DNA of 64,000 nucleotides. Origin: Octopus sinensis (taxonomy: Eukaryota). The stretch covers positions 78,120,001 through 78,184,000 of the forward strand of contig NC_042997.1 in the NCBI RefSeq assembly GCF_006345805.1, read 5' to 3'. Shown here piece by piece: positions 16,430-64,000 of the stretch. Position 1 is the stretch's first letter, and every line of letters starts with the position of its first letter. A program made the translations under genes and the position numbers. The notes under the pieces are model-generated. The model worked only from the letters and a program-made list of their open reading frames with translations. It did no database searches and was not told the DNA's origin.

Positions 16430-19160
16430 TAGCAATGCTCAAGTGTTGCACGAGTGAATGCAGAACGGTTTCATCGTTCTGCGTACGCATGAGGCAGGCG
16501 TAGCTGATGACACAACTATACCCGTAGTGTTTATCTAGAATCGGTTATGCTCCTACTTAGCACTGCCATGCAAAGAATTTCTGGAAGTTATCCATAGGTT
16601 CTAGCTCGAACGTTCTCCGGAAAAGGCCAGTCAGTTAATCTCCATTGATGCTCAGGGCTTCCCCGAGAAAGTTGTTGCTCTTATCCGCCACTAATCTTCT
16701 GTAGGACGCCATGGTAGAACATTCACTGACTACATTGCTAGATTGATAGAGGGCTTGGAGCACCTGACAGCATTCAAGGTGCCAGGCATCTTGTTTCGTA
16801 GGTCTACGCTTGGTCCAGAATTGCAGCTTAGTCAAAGTTGCAGAAAAGCGCGTCTAACAAACGGCGGCCACACTTGTTCACGGTCAAGAAAACGTGGGAG
16901 ATATCGCAGCCTCAGTAAATGCCTGCGCATCATTAAACACAGTATCCTCCACCTAGCGGATGTTTTCAGCAAATAACCGTCAGGCCAATGGAACACATCA
17001 CCTATACAGAAAGCAAGAGAGTAAGCGCTCCAATTTGGTCAGCCATGAAGCGGGAAATGGCACGGCGGTTAGGCGGTAAGCATTATCCATTTCCAATCAG
17101 CACTTCAGGGATAGTTTTCTCTCAGCCTATTTGTGGGTGAGACTAGCTACCATGTTTGTCATCTTTTCTAAGTTCTTGTCCACCAAAAAATTCTGAGTAA
17201 ACCAAACCTCGAGCAATTTAAATAGTCCGTCCGGCAAGTGCGAACAGTCCGTCCGGCAAGTTAATTTTTGCTCCTGACATCACCTCGTAATTCTTCAGAG
17301 TAGAGCCGATCACGTCGGTATCTGATACAATGACAGTAAACACGGTTCTTCCACATCCTAGTTCTCATGTGATGCCTCTCGAAATCTCCAACTTTCTGCA
17401 GTAGTGGCTCAAGAGTCGGTACATACAAAAATATAGGGAGGGCACATCCTTGGCGAACCGAGCGCATGATACTAAACACTTTCGACAAGTGGCCATTTAA
17501 TCTGATTACCGAGCAAATTTCACTGTATATTGCAGCAATTAAGTTTCTGCAGGCAGGCTCCAAATCAGCCATCTTCAGGACAGCAACCAATTATTGATGG
17601 TCAACCCAATCAAGCGTTTTCGAATGATTTAAATTGACCAGAGCTCCATTCTTGCCAATTTCTTTAGCTTTCTGAGATGTATCATATGACGAAGAGGTTG
17701 TCGTGGCTATATATGTTTGTATGGCGCTTGTCTGTACCTCACCTCTAGAGTATCAAAGATTCTTTGCTTGCACTTTGGTCAAAATTTTGCACACTGTGTT
17801 TAGCAGAGTTATGGGCCTGAATTTAAAATTATTCCCTCCCTCTTGTTCAAGTCCTTTCTCAGCAGCACCTTTACATCTCTTCTTGCAGGGTTGGATTCTC
17901 CTGTCCTGCAGCCAGTCGCATAAGACATCTGCCAAGAGGTTACCTAGCAAGTCTGGTACATGGCGATAAAGCTCGTAGGGCAGACCATCCAGTCCTGGCC
18001 ACTTCTCCATCGTGCAACCCGTCATCGCTTCTCGTATTTCGTCAGTTGTTATCAGCTTTTCGCAGAACTCTGCATCTCGAGCCGAGAGCCGCAGTAGGCC
18101 ATTGAAGCAAGCGGTAGGGTCCACTCCCATCTCCAGCCCACCGTTTGCCCCAAACTACTGAATGAAATGCCACTGAAAAGCCTCACATGACAGCATGGAA
18201 TCGAGTATCACGCGCTCCTCCCGATCCTCCAAAGACAAATCCACTAAACAGCTTTTGCTTCCCCATGCCTTAGAACTTGTGCCCTAGCTCTGACAATGCA
18301 ACCTTCGTGCTTACCGCTCAAGAATCGATCACGGACCAATTTCGACGCCAGCATGTCAGTTGCAATGCCTTTTCTAAGTGCCTCTTCTAGGTTACTAACT
18401 AGCCCACCCACTACTCGAGAATTGTCTACAACAATTCCCTTACTAAACTTTATCCATTCTAATCTAATAGCTCTTTTCATGGTAAACCACCATCAGTTGT
18501 TGACTATTGCCTTCTTGTAACTATTTCTCTAATCCGGTTTCTGTTAATTTGGTGCGCCAGAAAGACTCATCAAGTTTCCAGTAACCGGCTTCATGTCTAT
18601 ACAGCCTATCGAGTCGACCGTACAGCTCACAAATTTGTGGTTTGTATAACTGAAGATTTTGAATTGTGGACAACCTGTGCGATCCCTATCTAATGGCCTA
18701 CAGAATACTCTAGATACAATCCGGATGTTCCAGTGCTGTTTACCCATGCCTACATTGGCGCATTTGGAAAACTCAGTCGGTATCTGTCAGCCAGTTGGAA
18801 ACGACTGGGCAGATTTGCCAGGATTGCACATCCCTTTCCTATTAACTAACCCCACACAATCCAGACGTGCGTCCAAGATGACGTTCTGATTGTCTACTAA
18901 CACTAGAAAGTGGGGCGTCCCTACGAAGATCTCCAGACGCTTTAAAAAATCCGGCTGATCCGTCCCAGTCAAAAGGCGCCACCTTCGCTCTGCTATTCAC
19001 GTTCAAGACCATCAACTTACCTCCGGAACCAGGAAGATCTACCTATCTCGAAGAACAACGCCACTCCGACCCTCATTTTGGATCGAGTAAGTGACGCGAA
19101 GCTCTTAGAATTGCTCAAAATAACCAAGGCGCCACGTGCATTTATAATTCTCCGTATAAC
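16430..19160 (-). mobile_element. Near full-length decayed L1/Tx1-like ORF2 (APE + RT), same family as 1640-5870
   Basis: Minus-strand ORFs: FFKRLEIF..LVLVDNQNVILDARLDC, KWPGLDGLPYELY, FRPITLLNTVCKIL and IRLNGHLSKVFSIMRSVRQGC. Confidence 0.85.
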
Positions 19161-29393: not shown

Positions 29394-29409
29394 GTATAAT
29401 AAAATAAAG

Positions 29410-31860
29410 TATCAAAATAACAAACTCGGCATCTGAACAACTTTGGACCCCCATAACAACTGAAGAGGTCACCCAGGCACTGCAAAAACTAAGCAACTGG
29501 AAGGCACCTGGGCATGACAAGATCCCCAACTTCTGGTTGAAATATCTAACAGGAATGCACAAAAAGCTGGCTGAAAACTTTAACAGCATACTAGCAGAGC
29601 CAGAGACAATGCCTGAATGGCTCACGAAGGGGAAAACCATCTTAATTCCCAAATCAAATGAAACAACAAAACCAGAAAACTACAGACCAATAACCTGCCT
29701 CCCTACTATGTTCAAGGCATTTACTGCAGTGATATCGCAAAGGCTGAACAAGCACCTGGACGAAAACAAACTGTTCCCAGAAGAGCAGAAAGGATGCCGC
29801 AAAGGCTCATATGGCTGTAAAGATCAACTAATGATTAATAAAGCCGTAACTGAAGACAGCCACAGAAAGAAGAAAGGCCTCAGTATGGCCTGGATTGACT
29901 ACAAAAAGGCGTTTGATAGCATCCCCCACACATGGATCCTCGAAACACTAGCCATTAACAAAGTAGCACCAACAATCATAAAATTCTTAGAGCACTCTAT
30001 GAATAAATGGCAAACAGTCCTACACCTCCAAACAAAAGAGGGACTCATGAAAACCAAAGACATCCCCATTAGAAGAGGAATATTCCAGGGAGACACGCTC
30101 TCTCCACTCCTTTTCTGCTTGGTACTGTCACCTCTATCTGATATGCTAAATAGAACTGGATGCGGATATAAATGTTACGGCAAAACGATCAGCCACCTTT
30201 TATATATGGATGACCTAAAACTATACGCTGCAAATGACAAACAGCTGGAAACACTATTAAAGACAGTTCATGGATTTACCAAAGAAATAGATATGAAATT
30301 TGGATTAGAAAAATGCGCCAAAGTAACCATGAAAAGAGGAAAACTAGTTAAGAGTAACAATATCACACTAGATAAAACCAATGAAATAAAAGAATTAGAC
30401 CAAAGCCAAACTTACAAATACTTAGGAATCCATGAACTAGATAAGACACAACACACACAAATGAAAGAGAAAATAAAAAAAAGAATATTATAGACGAGTT
30501 AGATCAATACTAAAAACAGAGCTCAATGCTAAAAACAAGATAATAGGTATCAACACTTTAGCTGTCCCAGTTATAAGTTACAGCTACAATATCCTTAACT
30601 GGACACGAAATGAACTGTCCAAAATAGATAGGAAAACAAGAAAAATAATGACAGGATCTAGGATGCATCACCCAAAATCTGACATAGAAAGACTATATAT
30701 ACAACGTATAGAAGGTGGTAGAGGCCTTATACAGCTGGAAAACTACTATAAAATAACCACCATAGGTCTGCAAAAATACCTACTTCAGAAGGAAGGAAAA
30801 CTGATCCAGATAGCAGCGAAACACGAGCAAAACAAAAAACTGTTCTCAGTATTTAAGGAAGCTGACAAATACAAACAAGAAATCATACCACCTAATAAAC
30901 ACAAAGAAGAAGAAGAAGATGATGAAGAAACAACAAAAGCTATAAAACAAATGAAATCCAAACTAAAAATAGAACAGCAACGAACCATGATAAAACGATG
31001 GCAAGAAAAGCCCCTTCATGGTAAATACTGCACTAAACTAAACGCAAAAGAAATAGACAAAGAAAAATCCCAGCAATGGTTGAGAAGCTCAGGACTCAAA
31101 GCAGAGACAGAGGGATTTTTAATTGCAACACAAGACCAAAGCCTCCCCACCAGAAATTACCAAAAACATGTAATGAAAAGAAATATTACAAGTAACTGCA
31201 GAATATGTGGAGATGGACAAGAAACAATAAATCATATTATCTCTAGCTGCCCAGTCCTGGCTAAGAAGGAATATATTCACAGACATGACAGAGTTGGAAC
31301 CTACATACATTGGAAGCTATGCCAACATTATGGAATAACAACAGAAAAAAGATGGTATAGGCACACACCAGAAAAGGTCACAGAAAACGAGAAAGCAACC
31401 ATACTCTGGGATATGCCGATACACACAGATAGAGAAATTAAGGCCAACAGACCAGATATAGTTGTCAGAGATCATGAAGAAAAAAAATGCTTTCTAATTG
31501 ATGTATCAATACCGGCAGATGACAACGTGTCTCTAAAAGAAATGGAGAAACTCTCAAAATACAAAGACCTGGAAATAGAGGTAACTAGAATGTGGAACCT
31601 GAAAACAGAAACAATTCCTATCATAGTAGGTGCATTAGGCATGATAAAAAAATATTAAGACAAATACATAACAAAAACACCAGGACTTACAAACACATAT
31701 AACATACAGAAAATTGCACTACTAGGCACTGCACACATCCTACGCAGAACACTTTCCATACAATAACCATCAGAGCATCACAACAAATCACAGCACATAC
31801 CCAAGGCACACAGAGCTGCGCTCGGTAGTGAAGTGAAATCACGCTATAAAAATAAAACTA

Positions 31861-37399: not shown

Positions 37400-39660
37400 G
37401 AGCGTAATGCGACGCAATAGATATTTTATTGGTTGAACGATATTTCCACAGCTAGCGAGTCTTTGTCGAGTTCAAAAGGATAAGTGATAAAAATTCAAAA
37501 TTATAGAAATTCAAATCCAAAATATGAACGAGAGCAACCAGCGTTGCACATTGATAGATTAACATAATCAGTCTGCAGATTTCAAGTTTACAATTGGCAA
37601 AGAGAAAAAGAAAGAAAAAAGAAAAGGAAAATTACATAAACAATTTTGCGTAATTATGATGAAATTCTGTCATTTTATTCATTCCTACAGAGTGTGGCAT
37701 TAATAACTCGCAAACATATTTCTCCTCATGAATTTTGAGTACTGAAAGTGTAGTAGATTCAGAATATTTTCTGAGAATATGCACTTTCAAGTCTATTTCA
37801 AATTGATGGAAAATGTTCAGCAAGTTCTGTCGAACTACTGTTATTGGTGCTTGATGCCATATCTGTCCATTGAATCTTTTGTTTAATTGTTCTGTTGTAC
37901 AACCAACATAAATCAAGTTGTCTTTGGTGCATTTTGCTGCGTACACCAATTGGGAATCTCGCCACGTCCCACTTTCCGTGTAAATCATAACATTTCCGTT
38001 ATGATTCCTGATGGAATTCACTTGACTCCTGTTGTTGCACAATGAACAGGGCTTACCTCTCTTACGGCTGTTTTTCAAGGTATAGCGTGCAGAAACTCCA
38101 ATGTTAGTTTTCTTGGAGTCAGAAGTAGAGGATAATAGTTCTCTTCTATTTTTATTCCATCTTAAGTCTACAATAGGCGTATGAAGAAATATATTTTTTT
38201 TGAAATGAGAATATTTTTCCGAAGCATAATGGTAACTGTCATGTAATACTTTTTGAAATGCCAGCGAAATTTCGGCGCCAGTTAATCACAAAAGGAATTC
38301 TGTCAGATATTGTACTTTGCCAAAATTATGAGTGAAAATTAGACTTTCTTTGCTAATCATAGCTATGTCATTTGCTATTTCCTTTAATCGTCATTCACTG
38401 TAACTGCAGTTGACATAATGGTGTACAACAGTATTTGCATATTTCCAGTAATCCCCAATGTCAGTACAAATCTATTTTATCCTAAAAAATTGGGATTTCG
38501 GATTTGACCGAATTATATGCGGATGATCGGAGCGGCGGTGGAGATAAAAGGGGAATAACGTGGGCTTGCAAAATAACTCTGTCGCTATTCTGCTTCCAGA
38601 AAACTTAACTTCTGTGACTAAAAATTCAAAGTCAGTTTTGAAAAACTGGACGTAAATTCTATGTTGGACTTAAAGCCATAGTTTTTAGCATAACTGTCAC
38701 AGAAATGCAAGAAGTCAATTAAGCTATCCTGTGATCCTTCCCAGGCAAAAAAGACGTCATCAATGAACCGTAACTAGAGTTTTGGTTCATCACCATGTAG
38801 GGATTTGAATGTCTTTAGTAACTGTGTCTCGAATTTCAGCATGAAGACATTAGCGAAATTAACTGCCATAGAGGTACACATGGCTGGTGGTAAAATTTTT
38901 GTGCAAATTTCATTGTGTTACTTGAAATTTAGATGAAATACTTTTGTTTGACCGTTTTTCGAAGGCATTCATGCATGCGTCTACCCCTTCATCATGATCA
39001 ATGTTGGGATATAAGGAAGAAACGTCCATGGTTACCAAAAAAACTGTTTAAAAAAGTGGTTGATTTTAGACACAAAATCAAAAGTATCCTGAATATAGGG
39101 ACTTGACCTTTTTGCGACAGGGAGTAGAAAGCCATCGAGTGTTCTTCTTTCTGACCTTAAAATCTTGGATTCGGCCCTATTAATGAAATTGTTTTCCTCC
39201 ATTTCCAGAATTATTTTGTCAAGTTCCTCCCTGTAATTGGGGTTTGGATCGACAGGTAATTCTTCATATGAAGTTTTATCACTTAAAACTTCTTCACAAG
39301 CCGAAATCTACTCACTCTTGTCCATAATTACAATAGCGCCTCCCTTATACGCCATTTATATAACAATAGAATCATTATTAACTATACGGCGGAGTGCGTA
39401 ACGTTGAGAACTTGTGAGGTTATACTAGGACTTCTTTCCACTTATTTTAAGGCTTTCCCCAATGCCTGTCTGACAAGATTCAAGCAATTCCAGTGGTGCT
39501 TGTGAACGCCCATCTCGAAATTTATCTGGACACCAACTGGAATTCTTTTCAACCCAATACTGCCAAATTCATCATTTTTATTTTCATCATCATCATTTTA
39601 TCAGTAAGCATAGTATTTTTTGACTGCTCGTACCATTTCTTTCAAAAAAAATTTTCCTTC
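37400..39660 (-). mobile_element. Penelope-like retroelement (RT + GIY-YIG endonuclease), decayed
   Basis: Minus strand: AYKGGAIVIMDK (PLE KPADKG..V motif), TSMAVNFANVFM and FIDDVF. ORF 37632-38078 carries CSLC, VYAAKC..IYVGCTT..L.KRF and E...GMN of GIY-YIG. A 3' region with AATAAA follows. Confidence 0.9.
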
Positions 39661-44900: not shown

Positions 44901-46091
44901 TCAGGTCATCCCATAAGTTTTGTCCGAATTTTGAATAAAGAAAGCAAGTGATCATATGTGATATTTAATTGGACTTTAATCATCAATGTACTTTCCCTGA
45001 TTATGTATGACTTCTTTCCATCTATATACAAGCTTTTAAATCCCATCAATGTAAAACTCTTTTAGTTTCGACCTCCTCCTGGCTTGCGAAAGTTATATGC
45101 CCCAAATGATTCTGCAAACTACTAAATAAAGAGTAGTATGAAGGAGCAAGGTCGGGAGAATAAGGAGGATGAGGAATTTTTTCCCAACCAAGCTCTTCGA
45201 TCTTCTGTGATGTGATCTTTGCAGTGTGGGGTCGCGCATTGTCCTAATGAAACATCAATCCTTTTCGATTCACTAAATAGGGTCTTTTTTTTCTTCAAAG
45301 CTTGGTTCAAACGCTCTAATTGCTGACAGTAGACTTGAGCATTGATTATTGCATTAGATGGTAACAATTCAAAGTGAATTACTCCCTTGCAATCCCACCA
45401 GATAAAGAGAAGAACCTTTTTCACATGAAGTTCCCTTCTCCGTTGTGGTTGAATATTTTCCCCTTTTACCAAACCACTGTTTATGACGTTTAACATTTCG
45501 ATAGAAGATCCATTTTTCGTCACCAGTCACAAGTCTATCCAAAAAGGGTGAAATGAGTTCGCGAGAATGGAGAGAAGAGCAGATGTCAACTCGGGATTTG
45601 CGGTTGCTTTAGGACAATTCATGAGGCACCCATTTTCTATGTTTAAGAACCTTTCCATTTGCCAATTCTTCAACTGATAATGCAGGATTTTCTTCAAGTA
45701 ATGCCTCAAGGAGCTTATCATCAAACTCAACTGGACGTCCTGTTCGATCTTCACCTTCAAGGCTGAAATCTCCACTACTGAACTTTGCAAACTCTCTTCT
45801 GCAAGTTCTTTCATACAAGCATTCTTTCCCATATGTGTATGTTTCGAGTCGCTTCGGCTGAAGAGTTTCCTTTCTTGTACTTATGAAATATTATTTGCTT
45901 CAAATGCTCTTTGGATATTTCCATATTAGAAAGGGTTTTAATTAAAGAAATTTTAATTCTATTATTCTGTAAAATAATATGTAATTAGTTTAAATGGAAT
46001 TTTTAATTCCATTAGACATTCTAAAATACTATTAAATTTCATTCAATTTAAAAAAAAGGTAATATCGGACAGAACTTATGGGATGACCTGA
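44901..46091 (-). mobile_element. Mariner element with a decayed transposase
   Basis: TIRs TCAGGTCATCCCATAAGTT.TGTCCGA at both ends with TA on each side. Transposase motifs WVPHELS, TGDEKW, WWDCKG and YSPDLAP; several frameshifts. Confidence 0.9.
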
Positions 46092-48877: not shown

Positions 48878-49042
48878 TAAACACACCAACATCGGTTGTC
48901 AAGCGATGGTGGTGTGACAAACAGAGACGCACAAACATATACATACACATACACAAACATACATACATACATACATACATACATCATACATACATACAAA
49001 CATATAATATATATATATATATATATATAATATATATATATA
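48878..49042 (-). mobile_element. Left half of a SINE split by the large insertion
   Basis: AAACACACCAACATCGGTTGTCAAGCGATG..GACAAAC then (CATA)n/(TA)n; colinear with the intact copies at 42790-42895 and 63795-63910. Confidence 0.85.
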
Positions 49043-49126
49043 ATAATAAATATTAGGGAATAAATCCAAATTTACAGGGAAAAATCAGATTTAGGATTAA
49101 ATCGATTTTATAGTAAAATATTATAA

Positions 49127-52100
49127 AATATTATTCGAGACAAAACCACTATTTTGCAAAACAAACAAGGAAAGACTTAATCAATACATAAATTTTAATA
49201 AATAGTCAAAAAAACCGCCACTACAATCGTTTCTTGTCTTGATCGACAATCTTCAGGTGGACTTCCAATCTAAAAAATCAATATTTTAAAAAATAAAATA
49301 ATTTTAAAATAATTAAAGTATGAATGAAAAAATATAAGTATATAATCCATATATAACCTATCTATAATCCATATATAATCAATATATAACAATATATAAA
49401 CTAAAAAAACCTATCAACAATTAAATATAAAATATAAAATATAAAATATAAAATATAAAATATAAAACAAAACAAAAAAAATAATAATAATATAATATTA
49501 AACTATATATACACCCATACGCATATACCTAATTATATATAACCATATCTAACTACATACACTAAATCACACACCTATATATATATCCCTATACATACAC
49601 ATAAAAATGTCTAGGCAACTATAAATAAATAAAATAGCTAAATACTTCAACACAATACTTATTCATACTCCCACACACACACATACAACCCACATTCACA
49701 CTCTAGAAAATGGACATCACTCAAAACTATGAACGGAGAAATAGAATAAATGGAATTAAAAATTATATTCACTTGGTAAAACGAACACTACTTAAAAATT
49801 ATGAATGAAACAATGCAATAAAACAACAGACATCGCAAATAGACACAAATTACTACAAATTCCTTATCAAACCTACCATGATAACCAAAACTCATAAAAA
49901 CATATAATGATAAAATCTCCCTTTACTAAACTCTATAACAAACCTATATAGCAATCCCCCTAACCTAAACATTCACACACAAATACACACACGTAAACTA
50001 CACACCCACGACATATACAAATACCCACACCACTTACACATACCAATACATACATATAAACCTCAACATATACTCCAAAACCCACTCAACCCCACACAGA
50101 CAAATAAACACAAAAATTATGAATGGATTCTTTTATAAAACTACCATGATAAGCTAAAACTCACAAAACAGAAATGATAAAACCTCCCTTTACTAAACAC
50201 TAAAACATACTTATATATCAATTCCTTTAACCAATACATTCACACACAAAACCACTCGTAAACCACACACCCATAACAAATACAAACTCCCACCCCACTC
50301 ACACACACCCACAAGTACATATAAGCCTCAACATATACACCAAACAAAATTACTTTACCAAGGAACTTAACATATATATAAAAAGTATAACCGCTCTGGA
50401 AACGAACATCTCTAAATTAATGAATGGAGAAATGGAAGAAATGGAATTAAAAATAAAATTCACGTGGCAAAAACGAACACCACTCAAAAATTATGAATGA
50501 AACAATATAATAAAACAACCAACATCGAAAAAAGACAAATTACTACGAATTCCCTAAAAAAAACCATGATAAACCAAAACTCTTAAAAAACATATAACGA
50601 TAAAATCTCCCTTTGCTAAACTCTATAACAAACCTATATAGTAATCCCCCAAACCTAAACATTCACACACAAACACACACGTAAACCACAGACCCACGAC
50701 TTATACACATACCTAAACTAACTTATAAACCTCCATATACACCAAAACCCACTCCCTCCCACACAGACAAATTAACTCATACATCCCAAAACCTAAATAA
50801 CAAACCCATATACACATTCACACACAAAACACACACACACGCAAAACACACACACACACAACAGATACATATATTCCCTCACATATACGCATATACATAC
50901 TCACTAAACTCAATATATACAACAATATTTACGCACCCACACTCATACAGATAAATAAATTATACAACTAAAAACTCGCACACAATCTCATATACATAAA
51001 CACTCCTATGAAAACAACATTAAATACATCTTAATTAACCAGAATATCAAAAATAACAATATGACATAAAGGTAAATAAAATACATACTTACAATTCAGT
51101 GTCAAATTATGAAGTGAAATTAAATTCTTAGCCGTTAAAAAATCAAACCAAAATTACGTTACCATAGAAATAACTTATGTAAAAAAGACTAACAAACAAC
51201 TTGCAGTAACCCAATCCCATTCTCTATGCCTACCTCACTACTACACTATTCCATTCACAATTCCAAACAACACTAGTCCACCTCCCGGTTATTAACGTGG
51301 CAAAACGAACACCACTCAAAAATTATGAATGAAACAATGTAATAAAACAACCAACATCGAAAATAGACAAATTACCACGAATTCCCTAAAAAAAACCATG
51401 ATAAACCAAAACTCCTAAAAACATATAACGATAAATCTCCCTTTGCTAAACTCTATAACAAACCTATATAGCAATCTCCCTAACCTAAACATTCACACAC
51501 AAAAACACACTCGTAAACCACAGACCCACGACTTATACACATACCTATACTAACTTATAAACCTCAATATACACCAAAACCCACTCCCTCCCACACAGAC
51601 AAATTAACACATACATCCCAAAACCTAAATAACAAACCCATATACACATTCACACACAAACACACACACACGCAAAGCACACCCACACAACAGATACATA
51701 TACTCCCTCACATATACGCATATACATACTCACTAAACTCGATATATACAACAATATTTACACACCCACAACTCATACAGATAAATAAATTATACAACTA
51801 AAAACTCGCACACATCTCATATACATAAACACACCTATGAAAACAACATTAAATACATCGTAATTAACCAGAATATCAAAAATAACAATATGACATAAGG
51901 ATAATAAAATACATACTTACAATTCAGTGTCAAATTATGAAGTGAAATTAAATTCTTAGCCGTAAAAAAACCAAACCAAAATTACGTTACCATAGAAATA
52001 ACTTATGTAAAAAAAGAATACGCGTCATGGAAAGTAAACGTCATTTAAATTATGAATGGAGAAATAGAAAAATGGAACTAAAAACTATATCCACGTGGCA

Positions 52101-53292
52101 AACCAACACTACTTAAAAAAATTATTATGAATGGATTCTTTAAAAAACTACCATGAAAAATCATTATATACATCTATGAGCTTTAGCTCACCTTAGCAGC
52201 TCTAACAAACAACTTGCAGTAACCCAAACCCATTCTCTATGCCTACCTCACTACTACACTATTCCATTCACAATTCCAAGCAACGCTAGTCCACCACCCG
52301 GTTATTCACGTGGCAAAACGAACACCACTCAAAAATTATGAATGAAACAATGTAATAAAACAACCAACATCGAAAATAGACAAATTACCACGAATTCCCT
52401 AAATAACCATGATAAACCAAAACTCATAAAAACATATAACGATAAAATCTCCCTTTGCTAAACTCTATAACAAACCTATATAGTAATCCCCCTAAACCTA
52501 AACATTCACACACAAATACACACTCGTAAACCACAGACCCACGACTTATACACATACCTATCCTAATTTATAAACCTCAATATACACCAAAACCCACTCC
52601 CTCCCCACACAGACAAATAACACAAACATCCCAAAACCTAAATAACAAACCCATATACACATTCACACACAAACCCACACACACACAAAAAACACACACA
52701 CACACAACAGATACATATACTCCCTCACATATACTCATATATATACTCACTACACTCGATATATACAACAATATTTACACACCCATACTCATACAGATAA
52801 ATAAAATATACAACTAAAAACTCACACACAATCTCATATACATAAACACTCCTATGAAAACAACATTAAATACATCGTAATAACCAGAATATCAAAAATA
52901 ACAATATGACATAAGGATAAATAAAATACATACTACAAGTCAATTTCAAATAATGAAGTGAAATTAAATTCTTAGCCGTTAAAAAAACCAAACCAAAATT
53001 ACGTTACCATAAAATAACTTATGTAAGAAAAAGAGAGAATACGCGCCATAGAAATTAAACGTCATTTAAATTATGAATGGAGAAATAGAATAAATGGAAC
53101 TAAAAACTATATCCACGTAGCAAACCAACACTACGTAAAAAAATTTAAAATGAATGGATTCTTTAACAAACTACCATGAAAAATCATTATATACATTTAT
53201 GAGCTTTAGCTCACCCTAGCAGCTCTAACAAACAACCTACAGCAAACCAAACCTATTCCCAATTCCTACCTCACTACCACACTAATCAATTC
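49127..53292 (-). repeat. Left arm of a ~4.17-kb inverted repeat (PLE-like terminal repeat with internal tandem units)
   Basis: Reverse complement of 59259-63425 wherever checked (49141 pairs with 63411; 53292 pairs with 59259). This arm has an extra ~84 bp outward (49043-49126) and ~120 bp inward. Confidence 0.95.
49218..49260 (-). ncRNA. Minimal type I hammerhead ribozyme motif
   Basis: The minus strand reads CCAC-CTGAAGA-TTGTC(GATCAA)GACAA-GAAA-C(GATT)G-TA-GTGG: stem I 4 bp, intact CUGANGA and GAAA core, perfect 5-bp stem II, 2-bp stem III, and a GUA cleavage triplet. Confidence 0.8.
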
Positions 53293-53417
53293 CCAATTCC
53301 AAACAACGCTAATCCACCACCCGGTTACAATTCCCAACTCCACCCATTCATTACAATTTCAACGACATTCGCCTCCACACCCTACGCTACTTATAAGCCT
53401 CAACATATACACCGGAG

Positions 53418-53719
53418 ATACACTTACACATCCGTGCGGATGGGTGAGAGTATACATTGAGTGTGGTGATAGGGCTCCCATTACTATACACATTTGTACC
53501 TGTGTGGTAGTCTCCATGTGTATATTACGCACGGGTATAAATGCAGGGGGTACATGCGCACGTCATTTGCGTGTACCCCTCACATGTACATATGCATGCT
53601 ATTAGGGCTCGATATATGCAACAATGTAATCGCGCCCGCATACATGCATATGGGCGAATTGCACAATCAAAAAACGCACACGTGTGTGTGTGCGTTCCCT
53701 GGTTGTGCAATTCACCCAT
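53418..53719 (+). other. Block of five consecutive imperfect hairpins between the left arm and the HERC1 fragment
   Basis: Manual pairing: 53418-53453, 53461-53490, 53491-53543, 53546-53580 and 53589-53652, plus a nested stem at 53650-53719. Most imperfections are G-U on the + strand. Confidence 0.8.
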
Positions 53720-53744
53720 CTGGGTGTGAGTGGGTGTAATCTTA

Positions 53745-56700
53745 TCACTGTGGTGGAATCGGTCTGTTCCACCTCATCGATCTTCTCCATCAGTTCATTC
53801 TTGCGTGCCAGGGTTTGTTGATTGGCAAGTACAACTGGTACAAACCACATGTGTTGAGCCATATCATGAAACAATCGCTGGACAATTGTATCGAAATAAT
53901 CTCGATCCAGATCTTTAGGACATGCAGGGAGGATAACAGCCAGTAAGTGTAGCGCGATAAGACGAGTTCTCAGACTGCTGATTAATGGTAAACCTTTCTC
54001 GGAAAATTTTCCTGCGATATCAAGAAGCACACTGGTCCATTTTTTACAAGCCAAACGTGACTGGACAGGAACTGAAGCAGCAATTCTTCTAAGGAACACT
54101 AAGAAGTCACCAATAGCTATTTGGCTGGGACAGGATTCTTGCTGTATATCTTTCTCTTGAGAAACAGCTGAAGACAAGAGTTTTTCCAGTTGTTTCCACA
54201 GTAAATCCACAACATTCTGGATGACACCATCACTTAGTCTCTCGGCATACATCCCGGTGCCAACGGCAACGATTTGCAGAAGGTGTTGACAGCCCAGCTG
54301 GAGCATGTTGTTCAGCTGGAGGGAATTCAAGGCAGTTGGTGGTATCTGCATGGTGAGGGACACAGTGTGAGCATTCTCGCTGAGGCAGTAGAGGAGGGGG
54401 AGCAGCTGACCACAGGACACAGCAAGGGACAGGTCAGCTGGACAATACTTGTTGCTCATGGACAGCACAGTGGACAGGAGCAGCTTCTGCTTGGTGCTTT
54501 CCTCCAGTGTTTTAGATTTTGATGTCGTGACCAATGCCCCGACAAGCAGCTCATAGATTCGGTGGACTGCTAACTGCACCTCTTGTTGGCTTTGGGCTCG
54601 CGCCGCCTTGATCCCATCCTGATAGTGACTTCCGTCAGGCAGAGCTGATGTTGTTTCAAATGGTAAAGAACTCAATCCGAAGCAACCAGACAGGAACTGG
54701 AGATGGACAGAACTAAGTAGAGTGGTCAGTGTAAAATCTTCAGGTGAGCTGGTGTTGCTGTCCTGACTGTCAACACTGGACTGGCGATTGTTAGATGTTT
54801 TATCTTTCTCTGTGGACAACAACTCAACTATTTGGTGCAGTGAGTCAACACGTGATTGTGCCCTCTCTTGCTGATGTTCAAGGGATTTAGCAAAATATAT
54901 CTGATACATAATATGTTCGCCGCACACAAAGTGGAAAATGTCCAACATCAATTCTTTGATGCACAGCTTCCGACAGGTGTGATGTTCGTTCTCTTCGCCA
55001 AAGTATCCAGGTGTAATGTCACCAACACGTTCTTGGCGCCACCGGAGACGGCGCAAGATTTCTTTCACTTTCTGTAAGGATTCCATGCTGGTGTTTTCTC
55101 CTGAGAGAGGTGTAGCCGTACCATTGCATTGTGCAGCTGTGTAGCGCAAACCTCCATTGCCAGTGTTCTCGCTACCAGTTTAAGTTTCCCCGTTTGACTC
55201 CTCAATGTCATTCAAACAACAAAGGTTCGGAGAGCTACTTGTCCGTGTTACGGATTTCTTGTTCTTCCTCGGTGACAAATAAAGCCGTCTCTCTGTATTG
55301 TGGTCTTGTGCTACGTGGGACCGACTGCCGTAGATTGTATCAGACAAAACAAGCTCTTCATCTGCTAAAGGTTGTCTTACTCCGATAATAAGAAACACAC
55401 ATCTTTCTAACCAGGTGCGACAGATATCTTCAAAGGAACTGTCACCAGGAGATTCTTTCAACTTAGCATTGCTAGAATTATCAGCTTCATCTTTTATTTT
55501 CTCGAGTCCTTCGTCACTTTTGCCAGCTTCCCTGATGTCTTCCTCTTCCGATAAGCCATGGCCTCGTTTATGTGTTGTTATTCTGTCCGAATGTAAAAGT
55601 CCAGAGAATTTGGGGGCCTGATTCGGAGACAATTTATATCCAATAAGTCGACTGCGTGATTGATAAACCAGTCTATAAGCCATCACAAGACTGCGATTGG
55701 GTCTCTCTGTGGATTGGGAAAAGGAGAGGAGGTCACAGTGTTTCAGTAACGCTGCTAGCAAGAACCTGGATATTGTATCTAGGGAGACATCTTTCATTTC
55801 ACATGTATCCCAATCTTTTTTCTCAGCATACTCAAACATCATCCGTTGTACATGTTGCACCGGTTCCTTTGGAATGCCAAGACCAAGTTCCAGTAGGAAT
55901 ATGGTATCGGCATCGAAGTTGAGATCCTCGGGAATGTTCGCTTCGGAGGGTTTCGACGACAGAATCGAACACATACTGTCATGGATGATCAAATCTAATT
56001 CAGAAGCTTGTCTTTCAAGGCCATTGCTAAACAAACGACTGTCAAGCCACGTCGTATTGACTTTCTCTGAACTGGACAAAGGAGGACCAAGTAATAGAGC
56101 ATGTAATGACCGACCAACCAAGAGTGAACATGACCTTTCTAGGTCAAGTAGCCACGACCACTGGGATACAGCTGGACACTGAGATTCAGGTAGATCTGAG
56201 AGGTGGGGGTATTCTTCGATAATTTGGTAAGCTAAGAGGTTACGGTTGATTTTATCAAGGCATGGCAGGAAGTTGAGTAGATCATGCAACAATGGGGTGA
56301 GTGCTGAATGCTGAGGGAGTAACAACAGAGCGTAGATGACATGAACCAACATAGCGCCGGCAGGGGAATCAAACAGGATTTCTCCAACTTTCTTCAAAAG
56401 TGACGCGTTATCTTGTATATCTGCTATCATGTGGGAACAGCAGGTGATAATTTCTCCAGATAGTGGCAACATGAGAGACAAATGACGGTGGAGCACTGAA
56501 CTGGCACTGGACATGTCATTATTTTCTGAATTGTTGCGACAATAAGCTAGCAAATGTTTGTGCAAGGATGACAATAAGCTGTGCAGATGGCGTGGAGGGG
56601 AGCTGTTATCGACACACAGCAGTTGTAAAGCTTTATCACTGTTCTTCTTAATTTCATTCAAAGCTTGTACAGTATGGAAAGTGAGAGTCCTTAACACGGT

Positions 56701-59258
56701 TTTCATTAACACTTCTGCTAGTTCAACATCCATTGTGTTGTCATAGTCTGGACTGGCAGAAACGGTAGAATCGAAAGGCTCAGCAAATCCAAGAAGGGAT
56801 GCGATGTGAGAATTGTCTTGGAGACTGGCAAGAATGATGTCAAGTTGCATACGCTGGCCTCTAGATAGTGTGTCCCATCTATCACTGCCTTGTGGAAGCA
56901 GGGAATGAAGTAGTTCCATCCTCTCCTTTAATGGTGGTAACAATAATGGTGCTCCAATTGATAAAGTCTCTATCACAGCCTGTTGTACTGATGGGGGGGG
57001 TGTCGATATCTAGCAGTCGAAAGAGCAGATTACGGAATGGTCGAGAATGATCTCCAAGTATTCCCTTTGAGACTCCACTAGCTTGAGCAAGGGACAGATG
57101 AGTCCCCAGAATATTCAGACACAACTGAATGAAATGACAATGATCTTGTTTGGTGGTGAAAGGCGGTGGTGGTGCAGACCCATTGACGTCATCACAATAG
57201 TGTTCAAGAAATGTATGCAGTAAGAGAAAGGTGGATTCTTGTAAGTCGACACAGAATGGCCGATTCCATGCAATAACATTCCTGTCGGTGGGTAGAGCTG
57301 TCCATGCTATACTGTGTGATGTTCCTGCTGATATCTGGTGAATACTAACTCCATCCAACCCGATAACCTTCTTTGGCTTAGAGATGGGGCTGTGAGCGTG
57401 TCCTTGGCCACACTGACCCATTGTGTTGTTGCCCCAGGCATACACCTCATTCTCATGTGTGAGAGCCAAACAATGCGTATCACCACAAGCTATATCAGCA
57501 ATGCAGGTACTCTGGAACTCTTCTATCTGTCGAGGCCGCAGTGCAGTGTACTCAGGGGAGCCACACCCTAAACATGAACCGCACCCCCACGCATACACCT
57601 GTCCAGAAGATGTCAATGCTAACGAAGACTGCGTCCCACAAACGACTTTCCGGATGTAAAACTCAGTGAAAGTTTCAATGATTTTTGGCTTATAGAGGCG
57701 ATTGGTGTCTCCATGTCCCAACTTTCCATTATCTCCGCCGCCAAACGACCAAACTGTTTTACCATCTTGGGACACAGCAATGGTGTGTGAACTGCCACAG
57801 GCTACCTGGCCGACTCCAGAAACATCTTTGATGCATGTTGGTACGTTCTTACTGTTGCTGTCACCATGTCCCAATCGTCCATAATCTCCATCACCACAGG
57901 TGTACAGTTCTCCATCTTCAGTCACAAAGGCACTATGACGATGACCAGCAGACACACACTTGACCGCTTTGCCACTCAATGGTCCTTGAATCAGTTTGGG
58001 ATATTTCTGGGACACTGTGTTTCCATGTCCAAGTTTACCGTAGTCGCCATCTCCCCAACTGAAAACCTGTCCATCTGTTGACATTGCTAAACTGTGACCA
58101 TCTGATCCTTTGGATGACGAGATCTTTTTAATTTGAGATTTCGGGTCAAAGGTCAGCTTCTTTGGGACGGCCTGGTTGCTGGAATCTCCAAGCCCCAAAC
58201 GCCCATAACTTCCTTTACCACAGGCAGCTACTGATCCTTCATTGTGGACAACAAACGTGCAAAACTGGCCAGCTTCAATCTGTTGACAATCTCCAAAAGC
58301 TGATGTTAATTTCGGAGTGGTCACCTTCTCCTGGCTGCCCGCCCCCAGCTGGTGGCTGCTATTACTGCCCCACACATACACCTCACAGTTGGCACCAAAT
58401 ACAGATGAGTTACCTTCTGTATTGCGGTTTTCATCGGGACTCATGCACGTACTTGCATAATGCACAGCCAAGTGGTAAACCTGTTCCATCAGGTACATGG
58501 CAGCATCATACAAAGAAATCAATCCATTCTCGTCTTTTGTGGGTTTTTTCTTTACAGCAAGGAACTTATCAGCGCCACCAACGGACTGAACCATCTGCTG
58601 GATTATATCCATGAAGAAATCGTAATGGATGTTTGTCGATCTCTGGGAATGGTCATCAGATTTCATGGAAGCAGCATAAGCTTGCAGGGCGACCTCCACC
58701 CACTCTAACAGATAGCGTAAAGATCCCCTCTGGGCGGCCAATGCTAACATGAGTTCAGCAGCCAGCTGTTGACCGACCAAGTTAGCACTGGACGCTGGTC
58801 CGATTGTACTCCGCAGGAAGTTGGTCACTTGATTTAAGGTCTCCATCCCGAGTGGCGTGACCTTTATCTCATTAGCAAGGGACAGTGGGGGTAGTTTGGT
58901 GACGACGTCAACGGCTGTTTGGAAGACGTCATCGCATAAGCAAACGTTGTCAATATGAGGGGCAAGGATCCAATTCTGTCTCAGTAATGAGAACAACAAA
59001 CTCAACCCGGTCTTAATGCCCATTTCAATAAGAACCTCAGAACCACATTTTGTCTTATCCCCAGCAAACTTGCCATTGTCATTTGTTTTGTCAGCATCTA
59101 ACGACGGCTCTTCAATGTTGCTTTTGTTCTGGTCATGATATTTGCTTGATACAGCCGAATAGATTCGTTGTAAAACAGCAAGTCGCTTTTGTAAAGATTT
59201 TGTAAAAGGCGAAGTCAAACATATAGTCTCTGCTAAAACTTTCTGGCAACCCAGGAGA
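53745..59258 (-). pseudogene. HERC1: Intronless HERC1 coding fragment (roughly human residues ~90-2000: N-terminal region, RCC1-like domain 1 and central region), lacking start codon, SPRY, WD40, RLD2 and HECT
   Basis: LIEMGIKTGLSLLFSLLRQNW, LPPLSLANE, LAAQRGSLRYLLEW, RCC1 repeats (GDGDYGKLGHG etc.) and LLPPLKERMELLHSLLPQG match HERC1 as I recall it. ORFs 56882-59218, 55180-56976 and 53602-55149 join into one frame after one +1 in a G8 run (56993-57000) and one in-frame TAA (55180-55182). No introns over 5.5 kb. Confidence 0.9.
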
Positions 59259-62200
59259 GAATTGATTAGTGTGGTAGTGAGGTAGGAATTGGGAATAGGT
59301 TTGGTTTGCTGTAGGTTGTTTGTTAGAGCTGCTAGGGTGAGCTAAAGCTCATAAATGTATATAATGATTTTTCATGGTAGTTTGTTAAAGAATCCATTCA
59401 TTTTAAATTTTTTTACGTAGTGTTGGTTTGCTACGTGGATATAGTTTTTAGTTCCATTTATTCTATTTCTCCATTCATAATTTAAATGACGTTTAATTTC
59501 TATGGCGCGTATTCTCTCTTTTTCTTACATAAGTTATTTTATGGTAACGTAATTTTGGTTTGGTTTTTTTAACGGCTAAGAATTTAATTTCACTTCATTA
59601 TTTGAAATTGACTTGTAGTATGTATTTTATTTATCCTTATGTCATATTGTTATTTTGATATTCTGGTTAATTACGATGTATTTAATGTTGTTTTCATAGG
59701 AGTGTTTATGTATATGAGATTGTGTGTGAGTTTTTAGTTGTATATTTTATTTATCTGTATGAGTATGGGTGTGTAAATATTGTTGTATATATCGAGTGTA
59801 GTGAGTATATATATGAGTATATGTGAGGGAGTATATGTATCTGTTGTGTGTGTGTGTGTTTTTTGTGTGTGTGTGGGTTTGTGTGTGAATGTGTATATGG
59901 GTTTGTTATTTAGGTTTTGGGATGTTTGTGTTAATTTGTCTGTGTGGGGAGGGAGTGGGTTTTGGTGTATATTGAGGTTTATAAATTAGGATAGGTATGT
60001 GTATAAGTCGTGGGTCTGTGGTTTACGAGTGTGTATTTGTGTGTGAATGTTTAGGTTTAAGGGGATTACTATATAGGTTTGTTATAGAGTTTAGCAAAGG
60101 GAGATTTTATCGTTATATGTTTTTATGAGTTTTGGTTTATCATGGTTATTTAGGGAATTCGTGGTAATTTGTCTATTTTCGATGTTGGTTGTTTTATTAC
60201 ATTGTTTCATTCATAATTTTTGAGTGGTGTTCGTTTTGCCACGTGAATAACCGGGTGGTGGACTAGCGTTGCTTGGAATTGTGAATGGAATAGTGTAGTA
60301 GTGAGGTAGGCATAGAGAATGGGTTTGGGTTACTGCAAGTTGTTTGTTAGAGCTGCTAAGGTGAGCTAAAGCTCATAGATGTATATAATGATTTTTCATG
60401 GTAGTTTTTTAAAGAATCCATTCATAATAATTTTTTTAAGTAGTGTTGGTTTGCCACGTGGATATAGTTTTTAGTTCCATTTTTCTATTTCTCCATTCAT
60501 AATTTAAATGACGTTTACTTTCCATGACGCGTATTCTTTTTTTACATAAGTTATTTCTATGGTAACGTAATTTTGGTTTGATTTTTTTAACGGCTAAGAA
60601 TTTAATTTCACTTCATAATTTGACACTGAATTGTAAGTATGTATTTTATTTATCCTTATGTCATATTGTTATTTTTGATATTCTGGTTAATTACGATGTA
60701 TTTAATGTTGTTTTCATAGGTGTGTTTATGTATATGAGATGTGTGCGAGTTTTTAGTTGTATAATTTATTTATCTGTATGAGTTGTGGGTGTGTAAATAT
60801 TGTTGTATATATCGAGTTTAGTGAGTATGTATATGCGTATATGTGAGGGAGTATATGTATCTGTTGTGTGGGTGTGCTTTGCGTGTGTGTGTGTTTGTGT
60901 GTGAATGTGTATATGGGTTTGTTATTTAGGTTTTGGGATGTATGTGTTAATTTGTCTGTATGGGAGGGAGTGGGTTTTGGTGTATATTGAGGTTTATAAG
61001 TTAGTATAGGTATGTGTATAAGTCGTGGGTCTGTGGTTTACGAGTGTGTTTTTGTGTGTGAATGTTTAGGTTAGGGAGATTGCTATATAGGTTTGTTATA
61101 GAGTTTAGCAAAGGGAGATTTATCGTTATATGTTTTTAGGAGTTTTGGTTTATCATGGTTTTTTTAGGGAATTCGTGGTAATTTGTCTATTTTCGATGTT
61201 GGTTGTTTTATTACATTGTTTCATTCATAATTTTTGAGTGGTGTTCGTTTTGCCACGTTAATAACCGGAGGTGGACTAGTGTTGTTTGGAATTGTGAATG
61301 GAATAGTGTAGTAGTGAGGTAGGCATAGAGAATGGGATTGGGTTACTGCAAGTTGTTTGTTAGTCTTTTTTACATAAGTTATTTCTATGGTAACGTAATT
61401 TTGGTTTGATTTTTTAACGGCTAAGAATTTAATTTCACTTCATAATTTGACACTGAATTGTAAGTATGTATTTTATTTACCTTTATGTCATATTGTTATT
61501 TTTGATATTCTGGTTAATTAAGATGTATTTAATGTTGTTTTCATAGGAGTGTTTATGTATATGAGATTGTGTGCGAGTTTTTAGTTGTATAATTTATTTA
61601 TCTGTATGAGTGTGGGTGCGTAAATATTGTTGTATATATTGAGTTTAGTGAGTATGTATATGCGTATATGTGAGGGAGTATATGTATCTGTTGTGTGTGT
61701 GTGTGTTTTGCGTGTGTGTGTGTTTGTGTGTGAATGTGTATATGGGTTTGTTATTTAGGTTTTGGGATGTATGAGTTAATTTGTCTGTGTGGGAGGGAGT
61801 GGGTTTTGGTGTATATGGAGGTTTATAAGTTAGTTTAGGTATGTGTATAAGTCGTGGGTCTGTGGTTTACGTGTGTGTTTGTGTGTGAATGTTTAGGTTT
61901 GGGGGATTACTATATAGGTTTGTTATAGAGTTTAGCAAAGGGAGATTTTATCGTTATATGTTTTTTAAGAGTTTTGGTTTATCATGGTTTTTTTAGGGAA
62001 TTCGTAGTAATTTGTCTTTTTTCGATGTTGGTTGTTTTATCATATTGTTTCATTCATAATTTTTGAGTGGTGTTCGTTTTTGCCACGTGAATTTTATTTT
62101 TAATTCCATTTCTTCCATTTCTCCATTCATTAATTTAGAGATGTTCGTTTCCAGAGCGGTTATACTTTTTATATATATGTTAAGTTCCTTGGTAAGTAAT

Positions 62201-63425
62201 TTTGTTTGGTGTATATGTTGAGGCTTATATGTACTTGTGGGTGTGTGTGAGTGGGGTGGGAGTTTGTATTTGTTATGGGTGTGTGGTTTACGAGTGGTTT
62301 TGTGTGTGAATGTATTGGTTAAAGGAATTGATATATAAGTATGTTTTAGTGTTTAGTAAAGGGAGGTTTTATCATTTCTGTTTTGTGAGTTTTAGCTTAT
62401 CATGGTAGTTTTATAAAAGAATCCATTCATAATTTTTGTGTTTATTTGTCTGTGTGGGGTTGAGTGGGTTTTGGAGTATATGTTGAGGTTTATATGTATG
62501 TATTGGTATGTGTAAGTGGTGTGGGTATTTGTATATGTCGTGGGTGTGTAGTTTACGTGTGTGTATTTGTGTGTGAATGTTTAGGTTAGGGGGATTGCTA
62601 TATAGGTTTGTTATAGAGTTTAGTAAAGGGAGATTTTATCATTATATGTTTTTATGAGTTTTGGTTATCATGGTAGGTTTGATAAGGAATTTGTAGTAAT
62701 TTGTGTCTATTTGCGATGTCTGTTGTTTTATTGCATTGTTTCATTCATAATTTTTAAGTAGTGTTCGTTTTACCAAGTGAATATAATTTTTAATTCCATT
62801 TATTCTATTTCTCCGTTCATAGTTTTGAGTGATGTCCATTTTCTAGAGTGTGAATATGGGTTGTATGTGTGTGTGTGTGGGAGTATGAATAAGTATTGTG
62901 TTGAAGTATTTAGCTATTTTATTTATTTATAGTTGCCTAGACATTTTTATGTGTATGTATAGGGATATATATATAGGTGTGTGATTTAGTGTATGTAGTT
63001 AGATATGGTTATATATAATTAGGTATATGCGTATGGGTGTATATATAGTTTAATATTATATTATTATTATTTTTTTTGTTTTGTTTTATATTTTATATTT
63101 TATATTTTATATTTTATATTTTATATTTAATTGTTGATAGGTTTTTTTAGTTTATATATTGTTTATATATTGATTATATATGGATTATAGATAGGTTATA
63201 TATGGATTATATACTTATATTTTTTCATTCATACTTTAATTATTTTAAAATTATTTTATTTTTTAAAATATTGATTTTTTAGATTGGAAGTCCACCTGAA
63301 GATTGCCGATCAAGACAAGAAACGATTGTAGTGGCGGTTTTTTTGACTATTTATTAAAATTTATGTATTGATTAAGTCTTTCCTTGTTTGTTTTGCAAAA
63401 TAGTGGTTTTGTCTCGAATAATATT
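59259..63425 (+). repeat. Right arm of the ~4.17-kb inverted repeat
   Basis: Reverse complement of 49127-53292 with scattered single-base differences. Confidence 0.95.
63292..63334 (+). ncRNA. Minimal type I hammerhead ribozyme motif (second copy)
   Basis: CCAC-CTGAAGA-TTGCC(GATCAA)GACAA-GAAA-C(GATT)G-TA-GTGG; a T>C change at 63306 creates one mismatch in stem II. Confidence 0.75.
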
Positions 63426-63427
63426 GT

Positions 63428-63476
<49 letters not shown>

Positions 63477-63603
63477 CGACAGGCTTCTTTCAGTTTCCAT
63501 CTACCAAATCCACACGCAAAGCTTTGGTCGGCCCGTGGCTATAGTAGAAGACACCCAATATAGTTGGGAAGCAAGCTTCTTTCCACACAGCCACGCCTCT
63601 GCC

Positions 63604-63644: not shown

Positions 63645-63850
63645 TTTTATTCTTTTATTTGTTTCAGACATTTGACTGCGGCCATGCTAGAGCACCGCCT
63701 TTAGTCGAACAAATCGACCCCAGGACATATTCTTTGTAAGCCTAGTACTTATTCTATCGGTATCTTATGCCGGACCGGTAAGTTACGGGGATGTAAACAC
63801 ACCAACATCAGTTGTCAAGTGATGCTGGAGGTACAAATACAAACACACAA

Positions 63851-63911
<61 letters not shown>

Positions 63912-64000
63912 CTACGGGCTTCTTTCAGTTTCCGTCTACCAATCCACTCACAAGGCTTTGGTCAGCCCGAGACTATAGTAGAAAACACTTGCCCAGTGTG
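63645..64000 (-). mobile_element. tRNA-derived SINE, reverse orientation, running off the window end
   Basis: Colinear with 42648-43045. Confidence 0.85.

Follow-up and report, generated by a model that had tools for sequence, protein, structure and literature searches.

A spliced HERC1 fragment between inverted, 5'-truncated copies of a candidate Hydra-clade Penelope-like element in Octopus sinensis

Of all retrotransposon classes, Penelope-like elements (PLEs) are the one least understood, and in vitro reconstitution of how they integrate has only just started. Head-to-head copies, tails, hammerhead ribozymes and microsatellite targeting have already been published for these elements (PMC8557442, PMC4209133, PMC11167929). 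One lineage, the Hydra clade (Craig et al. 2021), is defined by a set of protein motifs, and both hammerheads and insertion into (TA)n have been reported for it (PMC8557442). Here we describe a 14.4-kb composite in which two inverted PLE copies enclose an intronless fragment of the host gene HERC1. It lies in a 64,000-nucleotide stretch of the Octopus sinensis genome (contig NC_042997.1, positions 78,120,001 to 78,184,000; hereafter the window), at 78.17 Mb of a 213-Mb chromosome-scale contig.

Several described systems bear on this locus. Chimeric LINE-1 retrocopies (U6-L1, mRNA-L1) arise when the reverse transcriptase (RT) of the element switches template; the 3' part of a 5'-truncated element is then fused, in the same orientation and through short microhomology, to cDNA of a cellular RNA. 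Bdelloid Terminons, which are giant, telomere-associated, Athena-based and deficient in endonuclease (EN), combine hammerhead-bearing PLE repeats with captured host genes. PLE capture of host genes has also been published for the rotifer Adineta vaga, where the captured genes keep their introns, lie between direct pseudo-long terminal repeats (pLTRs) with target-site duplications (TSDs), and were read as pLTR-framed units mobilised in trans; the same paper invokes template jumps for odd inserts (PMC3846280). Finally, a Poseidon-clade PLE protein from Anolis cleaves and extends both DNA strands in vitro, and begins reverse transcription at two adjacent internal sites, the interval between which is the genomic 'tail' (Frangieh et al. 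2024, PMC11167929). That work reported no template switching to host RNA.

We consider the octopus composite to be, more likely than not, a single dead-on-arrival insertion by a Hydra-clade PLE whose RT probably switched template to spliced HERC1 mRNA. In a comparison of the window with itself, the two arms aligned in inverted orientation (49118-53292 with 63436-59259, 99.47% identity over 4184 columns), differing by 7 substitutions and ~13 one-base insertions or deletions, many of which fall in homopolymers or A-runs. One strand of each arm is rich in C and A (GC skew -0.65/+0.61). Both turn their 3' ends outward and stand head-to-head within a split (TA)n microsatellite. The parts of the composite, in window coordinates, are as follows.

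49002..49042, no strand: left half of the (TA)n target; other family copies are likewise (TA)n-flanked
49043..49108, minus: 66-nt 'tail' between two alternative 3' termini, in the left arm only
49043..53753, minus (sense): PLE copy 1, the left arm; Hydra-clade, 5'-truncated 3' part (3' untranslated region (UTR) and 3' pLTR)
49218..49260, minus: type-I hammerhead-like motif of the left arm, the sole descriptor match in the window
49864-50344: 265-bp sub-repeat of the left arm
50458..53327, minus: ~3 tandem units of ~0.83-1.0 kb each within the 3' UTR; unit number differs among copies
53293..53753, minus: structured 'hairpin block' of the PLE 3' UTR, in copy 1 only; the right arm ends at its 3' edge
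53750..53753, no strand: 4-nt microhomology at the PLE/HERC1 junction, GTGG on the plus strand
53754..59259, minus: spliced internal HERC1 mRNA fragment, ~5.5 kb, with exon-by-exon matches
55180..55182, minus: in-frame stop in the HERC1 copy, from a substitution at 55182 (parent C, window A)
56993, minus: +1-base insertion, a frameshift relative to parental HERC1; in neither the parent exon (L047) nor the C8 fragment (L039)
57296..58399, minus: region coding for the RCC1-like domain (residues 287-654 in the translation of 59257..56885)
59260..63427, plus (sense): PLE copy 2, the right arm; 5'-truncated 3' part with the short terminus and no tail; 1-nt overlap with HERC1 (G, 59259)
63292..63334, plus: hammerhead-like motif of the right arm; U>C at 63306 breaks a helix II pair
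63428..63476, no strand: right half of the (TA)n target

The junctions are readable to the base. On the left, GTGG (53750-53753) is common to the PLE consensus (L032, L040) and the parental HERC1 exon; on the right, a single G (59259) is common to PLE and HERC1. Neither TSD, nor poly(A), nor target DNA was found between the parts at these junctions. The left copy reaches 461 nt deeper into the element than the right, and the 461-nt block folds as RNA at -190 kcal/mol, whereas shuffles of it give -154 +/- 6.5 (z = -5.6); this block belongs to the family consensus at many loci. There is no RT, integrase or transposase open reading frame (ORF) between the arms, where the long ORFs are HERC1 frames or chance frames through repeats. 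The flanks of the insertion (48880-49001; 63477-63600) are two halves of a common octopus repeat that resembles a short interspersed element (SINE) and has a (CA)n(TA)n microsatellite inside it. A paralogue of this repeat at ~63740-64000, ~300 bp downstream, is uninterrupted and provides a model of the empty site. This anatomy agrees closely with a first-pass annotation made from the letters of the window, which had described near-identical inverted arms, an outward-pointing hammerhead near the outer end of each, an enclosed hairpin block and 5.5-kb intronless HERC1 fragment, and the absence of RT, integrase and transposase from the interior. It had also read the HERC1 fragment as spliced and co-oriented with the left arm, and the right arm as an inverted 5' duplication, which corresponds to the 'inverted 5'-truncated copy' published for PLEs.

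The sequence between the arms is HERC1 coding-like on the minus strand, in three frames split by one frameshift and one in-frame stop. The first frame encodes an RCC1-like domain (Pfam WD40_RLD, E = 7e-133), and its best match in the PDB is human HERC1 (4o2w, E = 1.3e-97), ahead of HERC2. A whole-genome search located the parental HERC1 on another chromosome (C21:18500965-18544275), where it spans at least 43 kb. Window positions 53754-59259 match this parent exon by exon at 99-100% identity, with at least 25 exon segments verified; the fragment thus copies an internal stretch of the spliced mRNA. Four short gaps in this comparison were unscored, and the base-by-base comparison covered 1.74 kb, within which the window copy differs from the parent at four places (+G at 56993, C>A at 55182 and two more substitutions). 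Both ends of the fragment fall mid-exon, the reading frame running on in the parent exons, and neither a poly(A) nor a start codon was found in it. Having no start codon, one frameshift and one stop, the copy is a pseudogene fragment, and given the 99-100% exon identity its cDNA is of recent origin. It does not resemble a classical processed pseudogene: it is intronless, yet it ends mid-exon, abuts PLE sequence and lacks poly(A). The fragment is co-linear and co-oriented with the left PLE copy. A DNA search of the 2.72-Gb genome with the 5.7-kb centre of the composite returned only the window, the parental exons and one 539-bp fragment; the composite is single-copy and shows no sign of mobility.

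That 539-bp fragment is a second intron-free piece of HERC1, spanning several exon junctions (L039 1525-2062; G000:C8:81281924-81282461). It matches window 56661-57199 at 99.4%, is without the +G at 56993, carries two private changes and has no derived change in common with the window copy. Its sense 5' end adjoins (TA)10, and no PLE sequence lies beside it.

Two lines of evidence identify the arms: the behaviour of their ends across the genome, and the ORF into which they run. The outer 603 bp of an arm has >1741 candidate copies in the genome, and all 40 of the arm-end copies scored were 95-99% identical and reached the first base of the query. Thirty aligned arm ends fall into two discrete outer termini, 19/30 at the equivalent of 49043, which the first-pass annotation had given as the left boundary and which is thus a true family terminus, and 11/30 at ~49109. 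Both types are preceded by (TA)n. In six solo copies the inner truncation is variable and is followed on the far side by (TA)n again. Because its 3' end is fixed and its 5' end variable, the arm family is a retroelement and not a terminal-inverted-repeat (TIR) transposon. Among four other loci with inverted arm ends, three have the tail at one end only, and L036 has it at both.

At L032, L040, L041 and L042 the family runs at least 1.3 kb beyond the equivalent of 53753, into an RT/EN ORF on the hammerhead strand, as the PLE origin proposed in the first-pass annotation would predict. Coordinates obtained in two independent searches put the RT a constant ~1.69 kb from the structured block at no fewer than nine loci. 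The ORF stop lies ~5.4 kb from the 3' terminus, and the element is more than 8 kb long once the ORF is counted. The ORF family has at least 14,133 candidates, with >10^4 RT-bearing fragments at 80-99% identity. By sequence, then, the window arms are the ~5.4-kb 3' UTR and 3' pLTR of an abundant young PLE, 5'-truncated at different points. An independent head-to-head pair on C8, L037, shares the truncation point of the right arm within 1-2 nt, the break falling between ..G and AATTGATTAG (window 59259-59262, L037 883-884). This coincidence at the block's edge may mark a site where the RT pauses.

To place the ORF, it was aligned with eleven metagenomic homologues, which are 30-39% identical to it. 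The motifs are DKT, (R/K)WK, YRDD, CxCX5C, CxxC-E and N..CxH, with no CCHH; in full, the alignment shows MRWK, ADKT, GLYRDD, a CNCRxKxxC linker, VVY...Y-G...R...H, CxLCxxE and N...CRH, and in place of the RWK of its relatives the octopus ORF reads KWK. The GIY-YIG nuclease is recognisable at motif level and C-terminal, with invariant Y670, Y691, G693, R702, H706, E761 and N775 in the layout VVY..YIG..R..H...E...N. A profile search of PDB sequences with the PLE ORF found nothing, so that a fold comparison was required. In an AlphaFold model of the family ORF (P0001; RT core pLDDT ~90), the best PDB matches were telomerase RTs (TERTs; 3du5, E = 2.8e-9, and Candida TERTs), ranking ahead of DRT, retron and LINE RTs. 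Since the motif set equals the published definition of the Hydra clade (PMC8557442), we assign the arm element, on its predicted protein, to that clade as a PLE with RT and C-terminal GIY-YIG; its modelled fold would lie nearest TERT. Between the RT thumb and the EN linker of P0001, residues ~449-563 (L044, G000:C6:47399800-47403800) form an N-rich, low-confidence insert of ~110 aa that is absent in most homologues and that recalls those in A. vaga Penelope ORFs.

The 5' end of the element was found in two diverged subfamily copies, L052 and L053, in which the ATG is immediately preceded by the homologue of window 49389..49043 together with its hammerhead. Their N-terminus, MEFTGKIEPLFWDSSLKDIPIPS...SRIKWKAYYY, fits the clade consensus. 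Because the sequence that forms the 3' end in the window and in L032 also lies 5' of the ATG in these copies, the terminal sequence is a genuine pLTR, and the hammerhead noted by the first-pass annotation sits within it.

The octopus family shares further traits with the Hydra clade (PMC8557442): a single ORF with RT followed by GIY-YIG, CxxC/CxH pairs around E and N, an RWK-like motif, hammerheads in the pLTR, and insertion into (TA)n, which we found at both window flanks, at the 30 arm ends and on the far side of the six solo copies. As in PLEs generally, its copies are 5'-truncated, can have an inverted partner that is itself 5'-truncated, and may carry a tail at one end. In contrast to the described families, which are short (<3 kb) and few in molluscs, the octopus family exceeds 8 kb with its ORF; short length is a descriptive trait of the clade, not a defining one. 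The octopus family further differs in its long 3' UTR with ~1-kb tandem repeats and a structured block, in its N-rich RT-EN insert, in its more than 10^4 RT-bearing fragments, and in having U-A (or A-U) instead of G-C at hammerhead positions 10.1-11.1.

On the sense strand the hammerhead-like motif reads CCAC CUGAAGA UUGUC-GAUCAA-GACAA GAAA C-GAUU-G UA^GUGG, a full catalytic core with three helices. In both arms it reads outward; its distance is ~100-140 nt when counted from the short terminus and ~175-215 nt when counted from the long one. A type-I descriptor matched once in the 64-kb window against 0.013 matches expected from first-order Markov simulations; the right-arm motif misses the descriptor solely through the helix II U>C. 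The motif is invariant in 34/35 other copies. Three octopus subfamily versions differ only at N7 (A, C or U), in the length and sequence of loop II, at one loop III base and at the 10.1/11.1 pair, where the change from U-A to A-U is compensatory and keeps the pairing. Variation confined to permissive positions is the pattern expected of a constrained hammerhead. Related Hydra-type contigs carry, beside their ORFs, hammerheads of the same architecture (4-bp helix I, GAAA-C-loop-G-UA, sense). We therefore regard the motif as a putative hammerhead in the pLTR, in sense orientation, in which the usual G10.1-C11.1 pair is absent. A separate observation concerns L051, a 7621-bp metagenome contig from ENA: it is a tandem array of a short Hydra-type PLE with a period of 2513 bp and 703-aa ORFs, and each 401-bp spacer holds a canonical-core hammerhead on which Rfam is silent.

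The anatomy can be explained by the following sequence of steps, every one of which is inferred. A PLE ribonucleoprotein would cut both strands of a (TA)n target, and each 3'-OH would serve as primer for reverse transcription, which would begin close to the 3' terminus of PLE RNA at one of two alternative start sites. The left-hand RT would copy 4.7 kb of PLE RNA, then jump through CCAC/GTGG pairing to HERC1 mRNA and copy 5.5 kb of it, while the right-hand cDNA would halt at the edge of the structured block. The converging cDNA ends would then pair, each templating the second strand of the other. Cleavage and extension of two strands, two adjacent start sites whose interval is the tail, and a hammerhead ~90-100 nt upstream of the start sites are all features of the Anolis Poseidon system (PMC11167929). 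Unlike Poseidon, which belongs to a different clade and in which reverse transcription starts inside the next ORF, the octopus family has its termini 62 and ~128 nt upstream of the ATG.

What lies between the arms, a question that the first-pass annotation had proposed as a check, was examined in a small survey of six family loci. L031 (G000:C3:117390500-117400000) is a mosaic of five PLE segments (3' end, RT piece, 3' end, ORF/UTR piece, 3' end), whose order and orientation are compatible with one cDNA that jumped four times in series and then met another. L037 is a simple head-to-head pair. L035 (3270-5480; G000:C2:98899469-98901679) holds a spliced SDHD cDNA between a 1.9-kb arm and a 142-nt arm that starts inside the hammerhead core; the SDHD sequence matches Pfam CybS (E = 1.2e-19), and its three exons have counterparts of 98-100% identity at C2:79.47 Mb. 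The same locus contains a further host piece of 451 bp, 100% identical to C3:69646367-69646817, and in its middle ~400 bp with a 153-aa ORF on the opposite strand, an apparent orientation unexplained by simple template switching. Capture of host RNA is thus not unique to the window, and the fillers between arms differ from locus to locus. That the family habitually switches template in two-sided target-primed reverse transcription, and is a recurrent source of chimeric spliced host-mRNA retrocopies, with HERC1 in the window and SDHD plus one more transcript at C2:98.9 Mb as the cases so far, is a tentative proposal to which we lean slightly less than halfway.

Two candidate captures were set aside. 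L034 proved to be a solo copy in which the sequence past the truncated arm is ordinary flank after (TA)n. At L014 (2798-3380; G000:C12:74030785-74031364) a truncated arm stands head-to-head with a different, 580-bp repeat ending in (TA)n; this is not host cDNA but a young repeat with >2370 candidate copies at ~99% identity, and it may represent another PLE-mobilised or non-autonomous family. The join itself, like the mosaic of L031 and the contents of L035, fits a family prone to template jumping.

Several observations weigh against a template-switching origin of the composite by a Hydra-clade PLE. Pfam gave no significant match to RT or GIY-YIG domains on the PLE ORF, RVT_1 appearing weakly and in a homologue only. 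Rfam, at gathering and permissive thresholds, returned no hammerhead for the window, a 15.5-kb region or a 121-nt slice; this silence is uninformative, because Rfam also misses the canonical-core hammerheads of related PLE contigs. The sole witness to a 14-kb unit with 4.2-kb inverted repeats is the assembly, and the sole witness to a single event is the anatomy. At L035 the piece beside the right arm, oriented by its ORF and nothing else, seems to run opposite to what simple serial switching would give; the switching model is therefore incomplete, and the process can be more complicated. Microhomologies of 1-4 nt, moreover, are equally typical of end-joining repair. This last point belongs to the strongest competing account, in which a free HERC1 cDNA made by any cellular RT was end-joined between PLE cDNAs, or later into a head-to-head pair, with no switch by the PLE RT. 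The 1- and 4-nt overlaps suit non-homologous or microhomology-mediated end joining as well as they suit template switching, the C8 fragment beside (TA)10 indicates that HERC1 cDNA can integrate without arms, and the mixed orientations of L035 are easier to obtain by ligating separate pieces. However, HERC1 continues the left PLE copy in exact co-linearity and in the same orientation, which is what a continuous cDNA would show; filler is lacking at both junctions, along with target DNA, poly(A) and TSD; L031 shows serial same-strand jumps within PLE RNA; and for HERC1 to have entered later, the break would have had to fall precisely where arm meets arm, a junction with no (TA)n target. We judge capture by repair to be unlikely.

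The model of the first-pass annotation, in which the composite is a non-autonomous PLE derivative that carries HERC1 cDNA instead of an RT/GIY-YIG ORF between its hammerhead repeats and moves in trans as a unit, has a precedent in the pLTR-framed host genes moved by A. vaga Penelope (PMC3846280), and both octopus arms do end in a cis-acting pLTR with a hammerhead. It fares poorly on other grounds. A mobile unit is not what a single-copy composite suggests, the other HERC1 matches being parental exons and one 539-bp fragment. Nor are the arms short terminal repeats framing a cargo in the manner of a direct pLTR pair plus an inverted pLTR; they are 4.2-4.7-kb 3' UTR pieces, independently and unequally 5'-truncated. 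HERC1, for its part, does not stand in for the ORF but is an internal, mid-exon-to-mid-exon fragment joined by microhomology, and arm fillers vary by locus. We consider this model very improbable. Much the same low probability attaches to an assembly artefact, in which a chimeric or fold-back long-read join or a mis-scaffolded repeat created the inverted layout. Tandem and inverted PLE structures are known to trouble assemblies (PMC8557442), and no empty-site haplotig was found, a joined-flank search of the assembly returning the window itself and LINE copies of at most 87% identity. Yet intron-free HERC1 must exist in DNA for genomic reads to yield it, the ~20 differences between the arms show that the assembler did not copy one from the other, the head-to-head layout recurs at independent loci, one with the same right-arm truncation point, and the HERC1 copy has private changes relative to its parent. 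A fold-back or Pack-TIR-type DNA transposon whose long TIRs of tandem sub-repeats captured host DNA would account for the length and inversion of the arms, the tandem repeats that make up part of them, the variable centre and the lack of an internal transposase. We reject it, together with a satellite origin, as having next to no chance of being correct: solo arms are common, constant at the outer end but truncated variably at the inner one, where (TA)n adjoins, so that TIRs are not an obligatory unit; the arms are contiguous with the RT/GIY-YIG ORF; and the captured DNA is spliced cDNA, implying an RNA intermediate.

Template switching by the PLE RT to HERC1 mRNA thus remains our preferred reading, and its closest mechanistic parallel, by analogy, would be the LINE-1 chimeric retrocopy. 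Unlike LINE-1 chimeras, the octopus case involves a telomerase-like RT with a GIY-YIG nuclease, lacks poly(A) and has (TA)n as its target; at its other side the chimera ends in a second, inverted copy of the element, since priming would occur on both DNA strands. Like A. vaga Penelope, it has host sequence between PLE termini that include an inverted copy, and N-rich inserts in the ORF (PMC3846280). In contrast to A. vaga, the octopus cargo is a spliced internal mRNA fragment joined by microhomology to the 5'-truncated ends of two long copies. The combination of hammerhead-bearing PLE repeats with host genes recalls Terminons, from which the octopus element differs in being EN+ and in lying deep inside a chromosome-scale contig. 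Nothing relevant came up when full texts were searched for spliced retrocopies linked to PLEs, for template switching or for octopus cases. The statement of the first-pass annotation that it knew of no description was too strong in light of the A. vaga report, but capture of spliced mRNA by a cephalopod Hydra-clade PLE does appear to be undescribed; it is not categorically new.

The surroundings of the composite in the window are rich in transposable elements. A LINE RT lies at 29408-31658 (plus; RVT_1, E = 2.4e-33, followed by zf-RVT), a mariner-type transposase fragment at 45122-45526 (minus; Transposase_1, E = 3.2e-22), and more RT fragments at 2486-3213 and 17753-18154. At 37632-38285 (minus), a 217-aa frame carries a GIY-YIG-like motif, LIYVGCTTEQLNKRF, with a sub-threshold Pfam GIY-YIG match (E = 0.0034), and may be a fragment of another PLE family.

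The locus is a natural record of one integration: the 3' ends still face outward into the two halves of a (TA)n, a single tail and unequal truncations can be seen, and the junctions with the host mRNA can be read. This supports priming of cDNA synthesis by both target strands, and suggests that the RT can jump to unrelated RNAs. To the little-known Hydra clade it adds a very abundant family from a mollusc, one whose 3' UTR is unusually long and structured. If the proposal of habitual switching is true, PLEs provide a route to exon and gene-fragment duplication in cephalopods that is distinct from LINE retroposition and from the intron-retaining capture of rotifers, and surveys of retrocopies keyed on poly(A) and TSDs would miss the retrocopies that PLEs make. 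If such events are frequent in a family of >10^4 copies, PLEs would add spliced gene-fragment duplications to cephalopod genomes.

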